DNA from: Chlorokybus atmophyticus
Taxonomy: Eukaryota > Plantae > Mesostigma and Chlorokybus algae
Direction of reading: 5' to 3'
Assembly: GCA_009103225.1 (NCBI GenBank)
Contig: RHPI01002076.1
Span: 62,001-126,000, forward strand
Length of the DNA: 64,000 nucleotides
In this document: piece after piece, positions 45,036 to 55,297 of the stretch
How positions within the stretch are numbered: the stretch's first letter is position 1
Layout: each line of letters begins with the position of its first letter
Translations under genes and position numbers: made by a program
The notes under the pieces: generated by a model
Seen by the model: the letters and a program-made list of their open reading frames with translations, nothing else
Databases searched by the model: none
What the model was told of the DNA's origin: nothing

Positions 45036-48000
45036 ATGACGGCGGCGGTGGAGGTGGCGGCGGCGGCGCCCGCCGCCAAGTTGCCGGCGGGGGCGTCGCC
45101 GGAGCTGCTGGGGACGTTCTGGGGCTTGGCTTCCCTGGACCCTGCGGTGCGGCAGGCGTCGTCGAGGGAGCTGGTGCGGGTGGTGGGGGCGAGCGGAGAC
45201 AAGGCGGCGGCGAGGTACGCTCTGAGGCGGCTGCTGAAGGGGCTGGCGTCCTCCCGGGACGGCGCCCGCCAGGGTTTTGCCTCTGCTCTGGCCTCCCTCC
45301 TGGCCTCTGCTCCCGCCGCCTCTCTCTCAGCCGACCTGCCCAAGGAGGTCGCCGCCGCCTTGGAGCTGTCCGGCGGAGGAGGAGGAGGGCCGAGTGCCCG
45401 CAGCCGCAAGGATGTCAGGGAGGTGCTGCTGGGCCGTGTGCTCGCCTACGGCGCCGCCGCTCAGGCCGGCCCCGGCAAGCTGGGCCCTTCCTCCTCCGCT
45501 GTCCTGGCAGCAGCGAGGGACCTGCTGGCGGCGGCGGAGCGCAGCTCAGGGCTCAGGGAAGCCGCATGTTGCGTGCTGCTGAGGCTCCACCAGGCTCGTC
45601 CTCTTTCCCGGGAGGATGCTAAGACGCTGTTCAGCGAGCAGCCGCTTGCCAGCTGGTGCGGCGGCGAGAAACCCACCCGCCCAGAGGCGCTGCTGCTCGT
45701 CCTGGGCGGCCTGGCTAAGAGCCTGCAGGCAGCTGCTGCTGGCTTCGCTGCACCGCAGTGGGTCCAAGCACTGGCCTCTGAACCGCTGCAAGCTTTGGCT
45801 GATAAGGACATGCTCGGCAGACTGAAGAATGTCCTGCTGGTTCGTACACACGCATGCGTTGATTGCATGCATGTACTTGAATGCATGCATGTCTACACCT
45901 TCGTGTACACGTGCCCACATTGTCTGTATTGACCCTAGCCTGGAGCATGGTCTGGTCTTCCAAGCCAACAAACAGAGTGCATTGCGCATGTTTTGCATGG
46001 AGCTGGACAGCCATGCATGCGTTGTTTTGATCTCGCCCGTTTGGTCCAGCAGCGATTCCTGAGCTGCATGCCTGTGCGCGTTTTGACTGGCATTGCAGAC
46101 ATCAACTCTTGTACTCAATTGGTTCACTTATCCGTTCTCTTATCGGCTTCATGCATGTTCACGCAATAGTTGTTAGCCAAGCAGGTAGTGATTCAGCTGA
46201 CATATGTATGTTTCGACTACAGGACTCATCCAGTGCGCATCCGCGCATGCACGCCGTTTGGATGGTGCTGCTTTCGGTGTCCAGTGCAGGACAATGTACG
46301 TTGCCTACCAAAGCAGGCGAGGTTGTCACCCCAAGCAAGGAAGCTATCGACGCTTTTCTCCCAGGCTTGTGGCAAGAAGTGGTCGATGATGGTCTGCTGG
46401 CCTCCTCTCCCGAGCGCAAGCACCTCGCCTACAGCTTGTTTCAGCTGATTTTGCCTCATCTCACGCCACAACAGCTCATGTGCTGCCTGTCGGAGCAGTT
46501 TGTACATGACGTGGCCACGCACGCGCGCAGTACTGCCAGCCCTTTGCACCCGGCAGCATCTCAAGTGTGTAACCTTCTGCAGACGCAGTGTGCTTCTCTT
46601 GGCAACGGTGATCGAGTTGCAGCTCTATTGCGCCTTTCTCAGTTCACTGGTGGTGCCTTTGATCGAATGACAAACACTCGGACTGTCGCCACTCTGCATG
46701 GATTGCTTTCTCCAGATGAGCTCGAGCTCTACCGCAGCGCCTTGCTGCAGCTGTTCAACACTTCAATGGACACGCAGGCAGATGAACCAGCTGATGGACT
46801 GGCGACTTGGGTCGTGAACGAGCTGTGCAACTTGTTGAAGCACCCCAGCTTGTCCGAAGAAACCAATCAGCAGGCTGCGTTGCAGTTTCTGGCCGCGCAT
46901 GCTTTGCTGAATGTGTCATCAGAGGACTCCCCAGATGGATTGCAGTCTGTCAAAGCATCGGCACGGCTTCAGCAGCTGTGCGCCGCTCGGCTCGCGAGCG
47001 TTCTCTCAGCGCCAGCTGATCAGGTGGCAGCGAGGCGCATAACAGACCTTTTGGGCTTTCTGGAGCGTACGTTGAAGCTGTCAGGGGTTGAACTGCGCCG
47101 ACCTGCCGAAGAGGAGCTTCAGCAGTCATTGCAGTCCCTAACCAACAACTTGCAGTCCGAGGTAAGCGTGTCCTTGCTTTGTGGACTTGCGGGCTTGCAA
47201 ACCGTCAACCTGCAGAACAGCGTGCTGATGCTGTTGTAGCGTTGCTGTCATGGTTGGTGCATTAATTGTTGAATTCTGCAACTGTACTGCATGGGCTTCA
47301 TAGGCTTCAACTAGTAACTCGTGCAGGAGGCCAAGGCAACCAGCGACAGTCAATCTAGGCTGACTGTGCTGCGCGTCTTCGTGATGAGGGTTCACTTGCA
47401 GTATCTGCTGGAGCCTGAGACGTATGCCCAAGCTGCGCAGGAGCTGCCGCTGTGCATCCCGCACCTTCTGAACGACACCAAGCCGGAAGCGGACGCGCCG
47501 TCTGCGATAGATGTGTTTGTGGATCTCTTGATCAGCCTGCTTTCCACTCCAAATGCACCCTTGAGAGACATAGTGGAGCAGGTGTGTTGGTGGTGCAATC
47601 CGCTAGACAAAGCTCTTGCATACATCTTCATGGTGTAGTCACTCATTACTGGAGCAACGTTGTAGAGTTGCTTCGCCTGCACAAAGGTTTATAACAATAA
47701 ATGCTTTGGAACAGGTCTTCAAGGCGTGGTGCTTCAAGCTATCAGAGACTGCCGTAGAAGACATGTTGAGAGTTGTGAGACGTCGCATCCGTGAAGCTGC
47801 TGAAGACGCAAGTGATGATGATGTTGATGACGATGACGATGAGGAGGAGGAGGAGGAGGACGAGGATGACGTTGATGAAGGTGGTGATGACGAGGATGAT
47901 GGAGACAAACATGCATCTGATGTGGCGCGGTTGATGAAGGCTGAGGTTTCAGCAAGGGCAGTCGGTGATGAAGTTGGCTCAGAAGCTGACGAGAGTGATG

Positions 48001-49154
48001 TGGACGAGGAAGACATGGACGACGAGGCCATGTTTGCAATGGACAAGAACTTGGCTGCTGTGTTGTCTGCAAGTCGGCAGGCAAAGCTGCAGATGACTAG
48101 CACACAGCAGAGCGTGCTCAACCTGAAGCTACGCGTGCTGAGTCTTCTAGATGTCTTTCTGCATCGCCACCCAACAAACTTGCTCGTGCTACGCATAGTT
48201 CCTGCTTTGCTCCGCACGGCCTCGGCTCTGCATGATGTTGCATCTGCTGGCGTTATTGTGGAGAAGATTGTTGGCATGCTGCAGCGTTTGGCCAAAAGCA
48301 AGGACCATCCCAAAACTTTGGATCTGCCAGTCAGCCTTGCAGCAGAAGCGCTAAGGCAAGCTCTTCTCATCAGCGCTGCCAACAAGCGCGTGGCGAATGC
48401 AGCTATGGCCTGCAGCCACTTTCTCGTGCGGGTGCTGCAAGGAAGTGGCCAGACTGCCGTTGTTTGCGACACTTATGGCAAGGTGTTGCACGATGCGCTG
48501 GAAAGGAAAGCGCTCAAGCTGCCAGTTGCACTGCTGCTGGACTCTTTCTCCAGGCACACTTATCTTGTACCTGCGCTGGTGCCAAAGCTGATCCACTTGG
48601 GTTCCGCCGCTAAGACAGAGTTTTTGCGGTGCGAAGTGTTGGCGTTGCTCGCCAAAGTGCTGCGACACAACAACGTCGAGACCAACGCGTGCATCGGCGC
48701 CCAAGCGGTTCCGTTGATGTTGTTGCTGCAGTCCGCAATGCCAAAAGAACTGTCCAAGCCTGCACGCAAGGCAGACGCCTTGCAGCTCTGTTGCGTGGCG
48801 TTGCAGGGGCTTCAGCGGGTCCAGAAAGTGCTGCTGGCTGAAGACAATACAGCTCTCATACAAGCTGTCCAATCATCTCAGATTGCCACTCAGGCAGAAT
48901 GCAGCTCGCGCATTCGCTCGCTGCAACGGCAGGCTTTGAGCCTTTTGGGTGTCAAAGATGCAGCTAAGGCGGCAACTCAGCATACAGGCAAAAGGCAGGC
49001 CGATCCTGAGAAAAAGCAGCAGTTGAATCAGCCTCAAGTGTCAAAACGCAAGGCTTCCACAGCCAAGAAGGTCACCAGCAAGAGGCAAACAATGTCCGCA
49101 GTTGGCAAGGAATTAAAACCACAACAAAGCAAGGTGAAGCGTGTCAAACATTGA
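45036..49154 (+). CDS. POL5: MYB-binding protein 1A / DNA polymerase phi (Pol5) family nucleolar protein, ~4 exons
   Basis: Motifs FWGLASLDPAVRQ, YALRRLLKGLASSRDGARQGFA, HPRMHAVW, SSPERKHLAYSLF, DVFVDLLISLLS; acidic tract; MDDEAMFAMDKNLAAV; FKLR-like LKLRVLSLLDVF; basic tail. Approximate exons 45036-45840, 46222-47161, 47327-47581, 47714-49154. Confidence 0.85.
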
Positions 49155-50364
49155 CGGGGTCGTGGATTGTGCGTATCTGGCCAAGTACCAGTACCATCAT
49201 TGTCGCCATGGTACATCTTGCAGAGGCTGAAGATACCACTGCACTTATGGTGGGTTTTCGGACTGGCCATGTCCCTCCACGGGGTGTGCGTTGGTGTCAG
49301 TTTACTTCCACAATGCTGCTGCTGGCAGTGGTGTGCAGATACATTCATGCCCACTGAGTTGATGATCTGGTGCATCGCAGGGGCTCTGCAGCCGTCCAAT
49401 GACATCTGCAATGTACCAGGACAGGGGCTTTGGCATGCATGGAGCTATGTCATTGCTTCGCAAGCTAGTTGCGGCTGTGTGTTCTTTACAGTGAGGTCGT
49501 TGCCCACATGGTGACATGTTGCAACCTGGCCTGCTGCGCTACGCATGTTTGGGCAGTCCACAATTAGGTGGTGATGGTCATTGGGCTGCACCGGGCCGGG
49601 TCGGGACGAGTGTGCTTTCCTCCAATGCAGCATCGGTGTAGGTTGGTGCCTCAACGCGCCACTTTCGACTCATACTGGAGGCCTGCAGTGCGACATGACC
49701 TGCGTGCCTTTGCACATGATGAGCAGTTGTTGTGGCAGGTTTAGCCAAATCCAACCTTAATAGTACTATGGTGTGCATTTGTGTACTCTGCAAGTCTGTG
49801 TACATAAATGTACAGCATGCATGTGGTTACTGCCAGAACAGACATCCAGGATCACAACTGCCCGTATCAATGCAATGCCGTCACAACTAAACTACCACAA
49901 CAACAGCTATTAGTACAACAACAGCTAGCCAGCAGCACGACCACCATTATTTTATGCAGAGGTGTGCAACAAACGCCAATGTATAAGATAAGAGCACTTG
50001 CGGACTGAACAGTCACTAGCCCTTCAACTGACAACATTCACCCGCTAGTTTAGTACCACTGGCGTGGTGCATAGCGGACTGTCGTTGACATTTGGAGTAA
50101 TCCAACAAAAATAGCAGCATCACAGTCTATCAGTACACTTATTGTGTCCCAAGTTGCTCAATGCACAGCAATCACTTATGCACAACCGGGTATGACATCA
50201 AAAGCAGAATCACCATATACACACACAAAACAAAATATAGCAAAAAGAGGACAATGGCTTCACCTACAACTGAGCCGCAATCAGAACCAACAAGTAAAGT
50301 CTGGTCTCACATCACCAAAACAAACTAACGCGAGTGTAATATACTTAAGCAACAACAATGTGAC

Positions 50365-53129
50365 CTACACCATGGTAACATCACTGCCTTCACTGCCATC
50401 GCTGTCTGCGCCAGAGTCGCTGGACAACTGACCACGATCAGATACTGCAGGCCCCTCACTGTTGTAGTCTACATCCCCATCTTCCATGTCGCTGTCACTG
50501 TCGCCTGCTGACGCATTGCTGGAACGTACATAGAACATCGGAGCTGCAGTGCTGTCGAAGCCGTTGAAGTTGCTGCCAGCAGCCATGGTGTAGGCTCCCA
50601 TGTCAGAAAACATGAGCCAGTCTCCGCAAGCCAGCGGAGGCAGCCAAGTGTCCTTCAAGACAGTGTCGAGACCATCACAGGTTGGCCCAAAAACAGTGGA
50701 GCGATACTGCTTAGAACCAGCACTGTCGCCACGCGGCTGCAGAGGTCTCGCAAAAAGAGTGGCATGATCATACAGGAGGCAGTTCATGGAGCCGTACAGG
50801 CCGTCGCTGATCCAGTACTCCTGCACAGGCTCTCCAGAGTTGCTGCGCCTAACACGAGTTCCAAAAATGTTGCTCGCCAATGCTGCTGCTGACTCCGCGA
50901 AGAACCTGCCTGGCTCTGCAATCACCCTAACTCCGGAGCTGGCCGGGAAGTGCAGATTTAAGGCAGCATTGATGGCATGGGCAACGTCAGCAAAGGAAAG
51001 GCCGCCAGCAATACCGCCACCGGAAAACCCACCACCGATGTCAAGGACAGTCATCTGGGGGAGCCCAAGCTGCTCCGTAAGCTCAAACACATGGCGGGCA
51101 GCTTCAATTGCTGCAGAGAATGCGGCTGGGTCACTTGCCCCACTGCCAACGTGGAAGTCTACACCTTCCACTCTGACACCAAGCTTCTGAGCGGTCAGAA
51201 GCAAGTGCTCAACTTCTGCCATCTCCGCACCGTACTTGACTCCCAGTGGGCACCTGGCGAGCTTGTCATCTGCTCGGATGCGCAGCAACATTCTTGCATT
51301 CGGATCTGACACCTTGACCTTGTGCAGCTCCGACTCAGCATCAAAAGACATCAGATGGACACCAGCTGCAGCAGCGTGCGCAATATGCGCTGGTAGCTTG
51401 CAGGGGTTGGAGAACACGATACGATCAGGTGTCACTCCGAGCTGCATGACCTTGCATAGCTCAGCCTTGCTGGCGACATCAAATCCTGCGCCTTGGGCAG
51501 CAAGCACGGCCAACAGAGCGTTGTCTGGGTTGCACTTGACAGCATAGTAGGCCTGCACGCGTGGCAGCAGTTGAGTCCACTCTGCCCAACGGCGCTCCAC
51601 TGCACCGAGATCCATCACATAGAAGGTCTCCTCCAAGCCATGCTCCACAATGCAGTCCTTAGCGAACTGGTCGTACTCAGCAGACAGGGATTTCCCGCCC
51701 AAGCGCACAGCACCAAACGCATCATATACAGCCTCGAGGTTGCCAGCATCAACATGCCTGCTAACTTGCTTCAGCAATGCTTGCTCTTCCAGCATGGCCT
51801 TCTTTGTCACCGACGTGGCAGCAGTCGCACAGTTGGCAGATCCGCTACCTCCCTTGGCAACTGTGCCAGTAGCCGTTAGCTCGCAGCGTGCTGCGCGCAA
51901 GGGGCGTCCATCATTCAAAGTGAAGTTGTAGAAGGCAACACTTCCGCCATTGAGCAGAGACTGCTTGGTCCCGTTCAAGACCTTGTACCCAGCAGCGGAG
52001 ACAGATGTTGCCCACATGCCCTGCTTTGCAGTGGAGGCACCATCGATGGTGATTGCCACAGACACACGACCTGGCTTGAACACGCACAGCACCCTTGCCA
52101 GCAGTGCATGGATGTCCAGATCAGTTCCGCAGCCACTGGCTTCGAAACTGGCGTAGCTGAAACCAGACTCAGGTGTCACATGGATGGTGCTGTGCGCTGC
52201 ACCATCAACTCCGTTCATGGAGTAGCCGCACGGCTCGAACATGAAGGCATCAATCTCCATGCTTCGAATAAGCTCACTGATAGCGGAAGTCCTTGTAGTC
52301 TCTGCAGCACTGATATAGTCTGGACTACGGAAGAACTGCGCAGCCAAGGATTCGTCCAGCTCAGTCATGCAAACTTCAATTGTGCGGTGGCACGCAGTTG
52401 CCGTTTCCTCAGCATCAGCAGTATAGACATGCCAGTGTGGCCCCCCACCTAGCGCATCACCTAGCACGAATGCTCTACTGCCGCCGGCCAACTTGCCAAA
52501 GTAGCGTTCTAGGAACTCCGTCTCCTGTTCAAAGCTACCATGAGGGTATGGCTGGACTTGAGGAAACATGAAAGTTCCTCGAGAGAACTTGACGCGTCGA
52601 ATTGGCATCTTCAGCTGGCCAGCTAGCTCAAGGATGCTTGGCACAGCCTACGCAACAGAACAAGCATGAGACTTGCAGAAGACTACTGCAATGCCCAGAA
52701 GTGCAACTGGCCAAAGTACACGACAGAACAACCATGAGACTTGCAGAACAGTGAGCTGCAGTGCCAACAAGCACAACTGACCTACACGAATTTAGAAACA
52801 AAGTATACCTTCAACAGTGCCGTAGTGCCACATGTCTTCAGCACCAGCTTTGTCGGGTAGACAAAAAGACTCGACTCCGACAACACATACGAGTCGAAGT
52901 AGTCGTTGCTCAGCTGGGAAATGATGGTGCACTCAGCAACCTGCAACATCTTGTCCAGCTGGGATCGAGTCAACTGTCGTAAGCCCTTGTCAGACCGTGA
53001 CTTGGGCAGGTAGAAATCCAATTCAAGGCGCTTCTCAAAGCCCTCAAAGCCGGGAGCCGGGAGGCACTCCACCGCCAAAGTGGGAGGCACAGCAACCGGC
53101 TCGTCTCCATGAATGTCAGGCATTCCCAT
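50365..53129 (-). CDS. SAMDC-ODC: Bifunctional S-adenosylmethionine decarboxylase - ornithine decarboxylase fusion, 2 exons, 867 aa
   Basis: GCCGCCATGG start at 53129; exons 53129-52809 and 52647-50365 (161-nt GT-AG intron). SAMDC motifs: [14 protein letters not shown]|[33 protein letters not shown] motifs: [59 protein letters not shown]. No stop or intron between the domains. Confidence 0.96.
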
Positions 53130-53292
53130 GGCGGCTGGGAACCAAACAGACACGCACGAAGCGATAGCGATAGCACCCGACAAAGGGTGGATTGGTGGGT
53201 GGGGTGACCCGGAAGACGGCCCGCTGCCGTCTTGGCGCGGGCTGCTCCTAAATACCTTCAGCAGGGGAAAGAGCTAAACTAACTAACCACTA

Positions 53293-53528
53293 TCAGGAAG
53301 GCATGCGCACACACTGCACAACACACCACCGTGTCAGTAACCGTAATCAATATTTATCTCCAGCAGACATGCAAACAGACACAACAGGTAGCGCAGTGCC
53401 AGATAACTTACGTCTGCGTATGCAGCAGTGTGGAACTTCGGGATGCCGTCTGCGCGTACGTCCTCCACAGTGTATTGCAGGTGAAACTCAGAGTACGTGG
53501 TCTTGGACTTGCCGCCCTTGCGCTCCAT
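53293..53528 (-). CDS. Conserved plant-type SAMDC regulatory uORF, 45 aa, split by a 98-nt intron
   Basis: Exons 53528-53412 and 53313-53293 give MERKGGKSKTTYSEFHLQYTVEDVRADGIPKFHTAAYAD|CVRMPS*. Donor gtaagt, branch-like CTGAC, acceptor gtgcag. Aligns with the recalled plant consensus MESKGGK..GYSIEDVRPNGGIKKFRSAAYSNCARKPS*. Confidence 0.9.
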
Positions 53529-53537
53529 GGTCAATAC

Positions 53538-53771
53538 CTCTGCAGCGATGACAGCGTCATCAGCCAACTATGCTACTACCGTGAGTAATTTGCCAGACTG
53601 CTACCCCATTCAATGCTTGCATAAGATGCAACAAAAAGCGCAAACGTGCAAGAAGTGTGACTGAGCGAACGGAGATCAACGATCAACGATCAACGTTGAT
53701 CGTTGATCTCCGTTGACACAATACTGCTGACTGCTGCAAACTCGATAGACTTGCAGCTTACATACTCGCAT
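53538..53771 (-). promoter_or_regulatory. Predicted tiny uORF (Met-Arg-Val-stop) whose stop codon is created by splicing
   Basis: Putative leader exon 53822-53762 (acceptor ttctttgcgtag, donor gtaagc) ends ATG CGA GTA T. Joined to acceptor gctgcag at 53539 it gives TAG, 9 nt before the small-uORF ATG. Depends on predicted splicing. Confidence 0.5.
53668..53714. repeat. Perfect 20-bp inverted repeat (hairpin, 7-nt loop) built from GATCAAC units
   Basis: AACGGAGATCAACGATCAAC (53668-53687) and GTTGATCGTTGATCTCCGTT (53695-53714). Confidence 0.95.
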
Positions 53772-55297
53772 CGCCCTTAAGCAACAAGCGACTCGTGCAA
53801 TACCAATGTTGATATTTTAAGCCTACGCAAAGAACACCACTGCCACCCTGTAGCCTAAACCCTAGCTGCCTAACCTCAAGCCAGCAATACTACGAGCACC
53901 CCAAGCAGCGCCCAAATCAAGTTCAGGGGCAATAAGGATCAGCAATAAGGATGTATAAACCACGCAGCTCAATGCGCATAGGGAGTCTGCAACCCATCAG
54001 CCCTAGACCAGCTTGCTTGCTTGGCAGCAAGCTGACAACTCACCGTGATTAACGCGGTCCAGAGAAACGCCAGCTTGACAGCTTCACCCAGCAGCGCACC
54101 ACGGCGCTCCTCACCGCAAGCAAAGAGAAAGCCCAAAGACGGGGGCGGCGACGGCGACCCCGGGAACGGCGGCAGCGACGGCGGCGACAAGTGCACACAG
54201 CAGGAGTTGTGGGCCACGTATTTGTGGACCGCGGCAAATGTGGCGGCTGATTCAGCCGGGCTCACAGCTGCTTGCGGTGCTATGCAAGGCAACTGAACAA
54301 CGAGCCCACAATATTCCTATCTGCAACCTACCGTGCCGGTTTGCACGCAATCGCCGGGTTTACTACTGTAACCGCCGAGTGCGTTAGCATGCCCGCCCGC
54401 GCCATTCAAGTGCGAATGGCACCGCGCATGCCGGTTTCTGCTTTCTAATCCGCATCTGCTATTAGCAAACGGCACGGTTGGTTGCAAACAGCATTACATT
54501 ATAAAATCGAGTTTCATATCGTTATTCTCGACTGACGCTGTTGCCAGTCTGAAGACCCCCCTCCTTTCAAAAGACCTCCATCCCTATAATGAGTGTAATG
54601 GTTGCATTGTATACAACTTTATGCTTCTTCAACAGAAGGGGTGGGGAATTCAGTTAAAACAGGGGGTCTGTTCGAGTTGGTAGGGTAGACAACCAAACTA
54701 CGATGAGTCATCGTCTGTGACTGATACTTTAAACGTATTAAAATGTAAACGTATTAAAATGGTAATGCACAAATGGTACCGTACAATAATGATCATCTTT
54801 CCTATGATAAACGATTCTTATATTAATGAAAGCTTGGTAAGGTTTGACTTGAGCTTTTTGTGAGCTTAGTAATGTTCACGCACGTAACCCTCGTTTTCGC
54901 ATAATAAAGAGGGATCAGCCTTCCAAACGCATGCGTAATGTGTATATGTCTTTATTCACAATTACAATTTATAACCACCTTGTACGAGCCCTCCCACGCA
55001 TGACGGAACTTGATTGCACACAATGTAGCTATAGCCGCTGACGGTAAGGCTTGCGACTCACCGCGTGGGACCTTGTTCAAAATCACATTAGTAAATGTAA
55101 AAAAGAGGGGATGATAAGGTGCAGCATTGCAACGTGCCTGTTGCCTAGCATGCGCATCCTCCAAGTTCTAGATTGTGGCTGCATGGAATACCGGTATCTA
55201 GCTTTTGGTATGGAGCTCATGCTACACGTTTGCATACAAAGCTATATGACTTGGGTAATTACGGTTGAAGTTCAGCCCTCACACGGTGTAAGGGCTG

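Follow-up and report, generated by a model that had tools for sequence, protein, structure and literature searches.

A probable orthologue of the plant SAMDC small uORF in the spliced leader of a bifunctional AdoMetDC-ODC gene of Chlorokybus atmophyticus, and its counterparts in other green lineages

A short reading frame on the minus strand of the Chlorokybus atmophyticus DNA analysed here (a stretch of 64,000 nucleotides, referred to as the window) lies upstream of a gene in which AdoMetDC and ODC are encoded together. A preliminary description of this locus had taken the short frame for the regulatory uORF of land-plant SAMDC genes and had placed ODC under its control. The locus therefore raised the question of whether the short frame is a genuine member of that uORF family, whether it is carried on the same mRNA as the fused gene, and what such an arrangement would mean for the control of ODC. 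The question was followed from the transcript structure of the locus to its relatives in other green organisms, and then to the action that the peptide may have.

The uORF, its spliced leader and the fused main ORF

The uORF had 45 codons on the minus strand in two exons (53528-53412 and 53313-53293), with its ATG at 53528. Codons 1-39 (MERKGGKSKTTYSEFHLQYTVEDVRADGIPKFHTAAYAD; 53412..53528) translated to MERKGG...AAYAD and codons 40-45 with the stop (TGTGTGCGCATGCCTTCCTGA; 53293..53313) to CVRMPS-stop. The AUG stands in the context ACCATGG (TTGACCATGG), which is strong, as a reading of the sequence at 53528 confirmed. A phase-0 intron of 98 nt (53314..53411, minus strand, GTAAGT..GTGCAG) separates the two exons and sits six codons ahead of the uORF stop. 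Without splicing, the frame runs on as a 77-aa read-through ORF, which is present in the ORF list at 53334-53567 (minus strand, TTG start) just as it had been reported. The penultimate Pro and the terminal Ser of the family were retained in the Chlorokybus peptide, while two conserved sites of the alignment departed from the consensus (RADG for RPxG and RMPS for RKPS). The second of these changes accounts for the in-frame ATG inside the exon 53293..53313, which yields the nested MPS-stop that had also been pointed out; judged from the alignment, it appears to be a single K-to-M change found in no other species there, and no function is assigned to it.

Search of the spliced 45-aa peptide against the Pfam family AdoMetDC_leader (PF08132, curated cut-off 25 bits) gave 50.9 bits and an E-value of 1.4e-13 over profile positions 1-51 of 51, whereas the unspliced reading gave 34.4 bits and covered profile positions 1-45 only. 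The splice, which was confirmed by RNA as shown below, thus gives back the C-terminus of the family, and the plant-like end AAYAD plus CVRMPS-stop that had been predicted was borne out by both translation and profile score. The score of the Chlorokybus peptide was the lowest among the streptophyte copies (50.9 against 58-89 bits, the others being exon-1-only queries), and the match is still far beyond chance. By sequence comparison, the uORF is assigned as a true homologue and orthologue of the plant SAMDC small uORF (CPuORF homology group 3). The identity given in the preliminary description was therefore correct, and its label "land-plant" was too narrow for a family that has been published in green algae.

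RNA evidence was taken from assembled contigs of three runs (X1, X2 and X3, labelled "RNA?") placed along positions 49800-54600, a material in which minor isoforms would go unseen. Two same-organism runs covered most of the window, with shares of 0.83 and 0.74. A joint at 53313/53412 in an X1 contig skipped exactly 98 nt, and the ends of the skipped piece were CT..AC on the plus strand, that is GT..AG on the gene strand. The canonical intron that had been proposed at 53411-53314 is therefore spliced, with its coordinates exact. A 309-nt X1 contig carried this joint together with a second one at 53539/54044, which removes a leader intron of 504 nt (53540..54043, minus strand, GTGAGT..CTGCAG) ending 11 nt ahead of the uORF AUG. 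Beyond it, 85 nt of the same contig represented the observed part of leader exon 1 (54044..54128, minus strand), in which no AUG was present. Over the 397 nt of observed spliced leader, just two AUGs preceded the main AUG; these were the uORF AUG, which is the first of the observed leader, and its internal in-frame AUG.

A tiny uORF overlapping the AUG of the small uORF was looked for, and no AUG was found in the 96 nt of observed leader ahead of the uORF AUG; one may lie farther upstream, beyond the observed part. A 9-codon candidate just upstream in the genomic DNA (ATGACGCTG...TGA) was rejected because its AUG falls inside the 504-nt leader intron. The same intron contains a perfect 21-nt inverted repeat (AACGGAGATCAACGATCAACG and CGTTGATCGTTGATCTCCGTT, arms 5 nt apart, with GATCAACG units) at window positions 53668-53714, where there was no RNA depth.

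The spacer that separates the uORF stop from the main AUG was 163 nt long (53130..53292, minus strand), free of AUGs and unspliced. Contigs 52836-53247 (X1 and X2) and 53218-53313 (X1) were continuous through it, and no joint was seen between 53313 and 52836. A spliced spacer of about 42 nt had been expected earlier, but the intron needed for it (about 53255-53135) was unused in the X1 and X2 contigs. The 309-nt X1 contig ends at 53218, and the unitigs 53218-53313 and 52836-53247 have 30 nt in common, so that the uORF exon and the main-ORF exon are neighbours in the assembly graph. Through this link the claim that the uORF and the SAMDC-ODC fusion share one mRNA was upheld.

Downstream of the spacer, the main ORF consisted of 867 codons (53129-52809 and 52647-50365, minus strand) with one terminal stop. 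Codons 1-107 (52809..53129; start context GCCGCCATGG) encode the N-terminal part of AdoMetDC with the motif YVLSESS (PF01536, E-value 8.7e-35). Codons 108-867 with the stop (760 codons, 50365..52647, minus strand) encode the remainder of AdoMetDC, followed by a linker, by the ODC domain in full with its PLP-binding motif, and by an acidic tail (PF01536, 4.2e-60; PF02784, 5.9e-72; PF00278, 2.3e-18). The Pfam names of the three domains are SAM_decarbox (PF01536), Orn_Arg_deC_N (PF02784) and Orn_DAP_Arg_deC (PF00278), and the motifs read in the protein were YVLSESS for proenzyme cleavage, KTCGTT, AVKCN with the PLP lysine, GGGF and GPTCDGLD. From these domains and motifs the main ORF is read as an intact fusion with AdoMetDC at the N-terminus and ODC in the same uninterrupted ORF, and both enzyme halves look catalytically competent.

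The coding intron of 161 nt (52648..52808, minus strand, GTATAC..GCGTAG) keeps the frame and was confirmed by contig ends at 52649 and 52808 (X1, X2 and X3) that carry the sequence of the other exon. At the 3' end, an X2 contig terminated at 50220 in 21 consecutive T on the plus strand, which corresponds to the poly(A) tail of a minus-strand mRNA and delimits a 3' UTR at 50220..50364 (minus strand). Taken together, the joints and the poly(A) end indicate that the contig material represents spliced, polyadenylated mRNA. X3 contigs at window positions 51261-53153 differed from the window at 1-4% of coding positions and were labelled as the same organism; their source may be the paralogue or a different strain or species of Chlorokybus. 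The acidic Ser/Asp-rich C-terminal tail (window 50365-50520) was common to the fused proteins P0003, P0006, P0012 and P0091 and is reminiscent of phosphorylation or degradation signals. An adjoining ORF of 512 aa on the plus strand (window 47616-49154) showed a long Asp/Glu-rich stretch and a Lys-rich C-terminus.

The same leader before fused and unfused genes of green lineages

Protein database search identified AdoMetDC-ODC fusions in the streptophyte algae Klebsormidium, Mesotaenium and Closterium, in the land plants Marchantia, Riccia, Calypogeia, Selaginella, Adiantum and Ceratopteris, and in the chlorophytes Cymbomonas, Micractinium, Nannochloris, Trebouxia, Coccomyxa, Elliptochloris and Bryopsis. 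Fusions were also found in many environmental and transcriptome contigs. A homologous uORF was present upstream of the fused gene in all nine cases whose DNA was examined. Counting Klebsormidium, Closterium, Marchantia, Selaginella, Cymbomonas, Micractinium, a metagenome alga, a second copy in Chlorokybus and two contigs from transcriptomes, the same uORF stood before ten further fused genes or contigs, from both Chlorophyta and Streptophyta. No description of the combination had been known when the locus was first described; with the land plants Marchantia and Selaginella among the ten, it is not unique to this genome. Found in many green algae, in liverworts and lycophytes and probably in ferns, it is an old design that these lineages have in common.

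In Marchantia polymorpha the uORF reads MEAKGG...AAYSN, intron, CVRKPS-stop, with a spacer of 184 nt and a PF08132 score of 88.8 bits on exon 1. The uORFs of Klebsormidium (ending ...PAYSN, intron, CLKAPS-stop; spacer 172 nt) and Selaginella (ending ...AAYSN, intron, FVRKPS-stop; spacer 222 nt) both coincide with a PF08132 gene already called there. Transcript contig L004 carries an already spliced uORF (MESKKPS...AAYSNCVRKPS-stop; 83.6 bits) with a spacer of 162 nt, to which the 163-nt Chlorokybus spacer is close. This contig of 3.2 kb holds the uORF and the whole fused ORF on one molecule, and so does transcript contig L008 (MMETSP) from another species, where the uORF has 49 aa, ends in ...DMLGKPS-stop and is followed by a spacer of about 33 nt. 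The chlorophyte uORFs end in ...AECFD, intron, CVRKPS-stop in Cymbomonas (spacer 74 nt) and ...AGFCD, intron, CVKKPS-stop in Micractinium, and that of the metagenome alga (L009/L010) in ...AGFTDCVKKPS-stop with its intron elsewhere. Alignment gave a shared core of E-x-PL-x-Y-x-[VI]-ED-[VI]-RP-x-G-x-x-KF-x-x-AAY-x-[ND]-CV[RK]KPS-stop. Search of chlorophyte uORF first exons with PF08132 produced no match in Cymbomonas, Micractinium and L009, and 14.2 bits in L008; the homology of the chlorophyte uORFs is proposed from where they lie, from the alignment, and from the intron and the CV[RK]KPS-stop ending that they share.

Eight genes had the phase-0 intron at one and the same place, six codons ahead of the uORF stop. 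Six of them are fused (Chlorokybus, Klebsormidium, Marchantia, Selaginella, Cymbomonas and Micractinium) and two are stand-alone SAMDC genes, from the moss Physcomitrium and the angiosperm Asparagus; the intron was absent from Chara. In addition, an intron ending 9-22 nt ahead of the uORF or uORFs was present in Chlorokybus, Marchantia, Selaginella, Klebsormidium, Physcomitrium and Asparagus. Leaders of one architecture, in which two intron positions are conserved, precede fused as well as unfused SAMDC genes over the range from chlorophytes to angiosperms. Whether the peptide occurs with fused or unfused SAMDC was a check proposed with the preliminary description, and the uORF precedes SAMDC genes of both kinds. 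Marchantia (ATGTTATAATGG), Selaginella (ATGTTTTAATGG) and contig L004 (ATGACATAATGG) had, ahead of their fused genes, tiny uORFs with a one-base overlap. The dual-uORF regions, each with a 2-codon tiny uORF and the small uORF, were located at 4428-4816 of L002 (Marchantia), 3553-3778 of L005 (Selaginella) and 178-347 of L004, which places ODC in these three behind the classic SAMDC circuit.

The best database match of the window's main protein was the Chlorokybus model Chrsp13S02157 (P0001, 948 aa), with 100% identity. A second Chlorokybus gene, Chrsp1S03129 (P0002), was 92% identical and had its own uORF peptide beginning METKGGKSKTTYSEFRLQYIVEDVRADGIPKFHTAAYAD, in which 36 of 39 residues were identical to the window uORF (33.6 bits on PF08132). 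In view of this copy with a uORF of its own, the label "single-switch homeostat" that had been given to the locus appears overstated. The P0002 model is without approximately 45 AdoMetDC residues, among them the YVLSESS cleavage site and KTCGTT, which points to an error in the model or else to damage in the SAMDC half of the second copy. No stand-alone Chlorokybus SAMDC or ODC was present among the best 120 hits of each domain-only protein search.

For the SAMDC domain, a maximum-likelihood tree (43 rows, without a non-green outgroup) separated Chlorophyta from Streptophyta with support of 99/97 and placed Chlorokybus as sister to all remaining streptophytes. Fused and stand-alone genes were interleaved in it, and no fewer than five changes of state are required by its well-supported branches. 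The tree of the ODC domain (45 rows, rooted on two insect ODCs) showed one green clade with support of 100/100, again with fused and free genes interleaved. Fused genes were basal on both sides of the green split. Two free Closterium ODC entries, P0253 and P0260, were nearly identical to the ODC half of the fused P0091 (branch lengths 0.003-0.02) and are probably cut-down models of the Closterium fusion, which calls for caution with counts of free against fused genes.

As the trees have it, the fusions of the green lineage appear to be one family tracking the species tree. The simplest reading that they suggest is that the ancestral gene was already fused and carried the uORF, and that genes were later duplicated and lost domains. 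A fuller scenario is put forward tentatively, and on balance the scales tip slightly against it. It holds that the uORF did not originate as a control of SAMDC only, that in the green-plant ancestor it already governed an AdoMetDC-ODC gene, that the dual-uORF form still operates in liverworts, lycophytes and probably ferns, and that the stand-alone SAMDC (uORF kept) and ODC (uORF lost) of seed plants are later products of duplication and domain loss. If this were true, polyamines would act back directly, via a nascent-peptide sensor, on the translation of ODC over much of the green lineage, a form of control for plant ODC of which no description was found in the accessible literature. The wider pattern, in which an ancestral arrangement still present in land plants puts ODC under the SAMDC uORF, may merit a test by a polyamine specialist. 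With Chlorokybus, the plant SAMDC uORF and its intron positions are placed at the very base of the streptophytes.

How the uORF may act on the bifunctional mRNA

The reading preferred here, with a probability of roughly 0.75, is that the uORF is the Chlorokybus orthologue of the SAMDC small uORF, lies in the spliced leader of the bifunctional gene and acts as in Arabidopsis. Polyamine-dependent stalling at the Chlorokybus uORF is expected by homology with Arabidopsis AdoMetDC1. For plants, the accessible text of Ivanov, Atkins & Michael 2010 (PMC2811004) describes sequence-dependent repression of downstream translation by the small uORF, which mediates polyamine feedback, and notes the penultimate Pro. 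For Arabidopsis, polyamine-responsive ribosome arrest at the uORF stop, together with nonsense-mediated decay (NMD), is attributed to the uORF peptide by Uchiyama-Kadokura et al. 2014, as cited in the accessible text of PMC5587730.

Under this mechanism, most scanning ribosomes would translate the uORF. At high polyamine levels the nascent peptide would arrest the ribosome at the uORF stop codon, which would block scanning and reinitiation and would probably trigger NMD. An exon junction is located 484 nt downstream of the uORF stop, so the mRNA would be an NMD substrate upon termination or stalling there. At low polyamine levels, termination would be normal and 40S subunits would reinitiate at the main AUG, as the 163-nt spacer would permit. 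Because the main ORF is bifunctional, putrescine synthesis by ODC and the synthesis of the aminopropyl donor by AdoMetDC would be throttled together. As the observed leader shows no tiny uORF, the bypass at low polyamine levels would rest on leaky scanning or reinitiation and not on the dual-uORF trick of land plants. The preliminary description had set ODC under the SAMDC peptide sensor in place of antizyme-type control. Its first half stands in so far as ODC falls under whatever control the uORF exerts, and the contrast with antizyme adds little.

An unlikely alternative is that the uORF is a conserved and constitutive brake, translated and lowering translation of the main ORF with no polyamine response in Chlorokybus, which would have lost it or never had it. 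Ribosome capture and NMD could for example be its sole action. The two altered consensus positions (P to A in RPxG and K to M in RKPS), the lack of a tiny uORF for regulated bypass and a Pfam score below that of the other streptophytes would all fit a peptide of this kind. However, it is the peptide sequence and not merely an ORF that has been kept across the green lineage and in both Chlorokybus copies (36/39), which argues that selection has acted on the peptide itself, as it would if the peptide arrests ribosomes. The conservation of the penultimate Pro and the terminal Ser also speaks against a merely constitutive brake.

Very improbable is the reading of the first uORF exon as an N-terminal coding exon, with 39 codons spliced to an acceptor near 53255 to give an N-terminally extended enzyme. 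This is what the JGI model P0001 depicts, in which uORF codons 1-39 are spliced so as to continue in frame with the enzyme, and P0001, its paralogue P0002 and the Closterium model P0091 all merge the leader peptide with the enzyme. The merged models yield a false Pfam architecture of PF08132+PF01536+PF02784+PF00278, and the RNA contradicts the Chlorokybus model. The sole RNA joint from the donor at 53412 goes to 53313, with the stop 21 nt on. Moreover, the JGI acceptor near 53255 is rejected in view of RNA contigs that contain 53256-53313, the piece modelled as intron. The splice from 53412 to about 53255 being absent from the RNA contigs, P0001 appears to be an artefact of prediction; gene predictors that maximise ORF length often make such an error of merging leader and enzyme. 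Spliced transcripts of other species also end the uORF at the PS-stop well ahead of the main AUG. The public Chlorokybus models, in which a regulatory peptide is read as part of an enzyme, are corrected by this result. Finally, a chance ORF with accidental resemblance, which has its short length alone in its favour, is refuted by the Pfam E-value of 1.4e-13, by a splice confirmed independently of similarity and by the at least 12 other genes in which the uORF has kept its position, the place of its intron and its C-terminal motif.

Comparison with known polyamine control systems

The closest known system is the plant SAMDC small uORF, exemplified by the S-uORF of Arabidopsis AdoMetDC1. The Chlorokybus uORF resembles it in its full-length profile match, its position in the leader of an AdoMetDC mRNA, its core ...ED[VI]R..G..KF..AAY..CVR.PS-stop and its penultimate Pro, and resembles the SAMDC genes of Asparagus and Physcomitrium in the phase-0 uORF intron and the intron just upstream. 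It differs from the plant system in that the main ORF encodes ODC too, that A and M replace a conserved P and K, that the N-terminal Ser/Lys-rich part is shorter than in land plants (45 aa against 48-55) and that the observed leader is without the overlapping tiny uORF of land-plant SAMDC leaders.

Among green algae, the uORF family is already known, having been described for Chlamydomonas, Volvox, Chlorella, prasinophytes and Ulva in the accessible texts of Ivanov, Atkins & Michael 2010 (PMC2811004) and Hayden & Jorgensen 2007 (PMC2075485). Also known already is the PF08132 gene beside the fusion in the annotations of Klebsormidium and Selaginella. According to the accessible text of PMC2811004, Chlorella and prasinophytes lack the tiny uORF, which agrees with the observed Chlorokybus leader. 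Unlike the present case, those green-algal uORFs are presented in the accessible texts of PMC2811004 and PMC2075485 with no mention of an ODC fusion of the main ORF, and Chlorokybus is not included there. A literature search, in which subscription journals lay mostly outside the range, found no text on a uORF before a fused gene, nor on the fusion in streptophytes or land plants.

The bifunctional AdoMetDC-ODC of Plasmodium shares with the Chlorokybus protein the AdoMetDC N-terminus, the linker and the ODC C-terminus in one polypeptide; Plasmodium is not known to have a conserved-peptide uORF. A fusion in the green alga Micromonas is said to be mentioned by Green et al. in 2011 (Mol Microbiol 81:1109). 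It reportedly has the same order of AdoMetDC, linker and ODC. Indirect support for a Micromonas fusion comes from a review table which gives one accession for both enzymes of Micromonas pusilla (PMC6356823).

In principle, the proposed control is comparable to the mammalian MAGDIS uORF of AMD1 and the frameshift sensor of antizyme, each of which has a polyamine-sensitive translational event in a negative feedback. The AMD1 uORF has no sequence relationship to the Chlorokybus uORF and encodes a peptide of another length. Antizyme acts on the ODC protein, by frameshifting, and the Chlorokybus case has no antizyme element. Antizyme is not known from plants. The ODC mRNA of many green organisms, among them the transformable liverwort Marchantia, carries one or more uORFs of the polyamine-responsive family, and this offers a simple possible answer, testable in Marchantia, to the question of how polyamine levels could act back on ODC in plants that lack antizyme.
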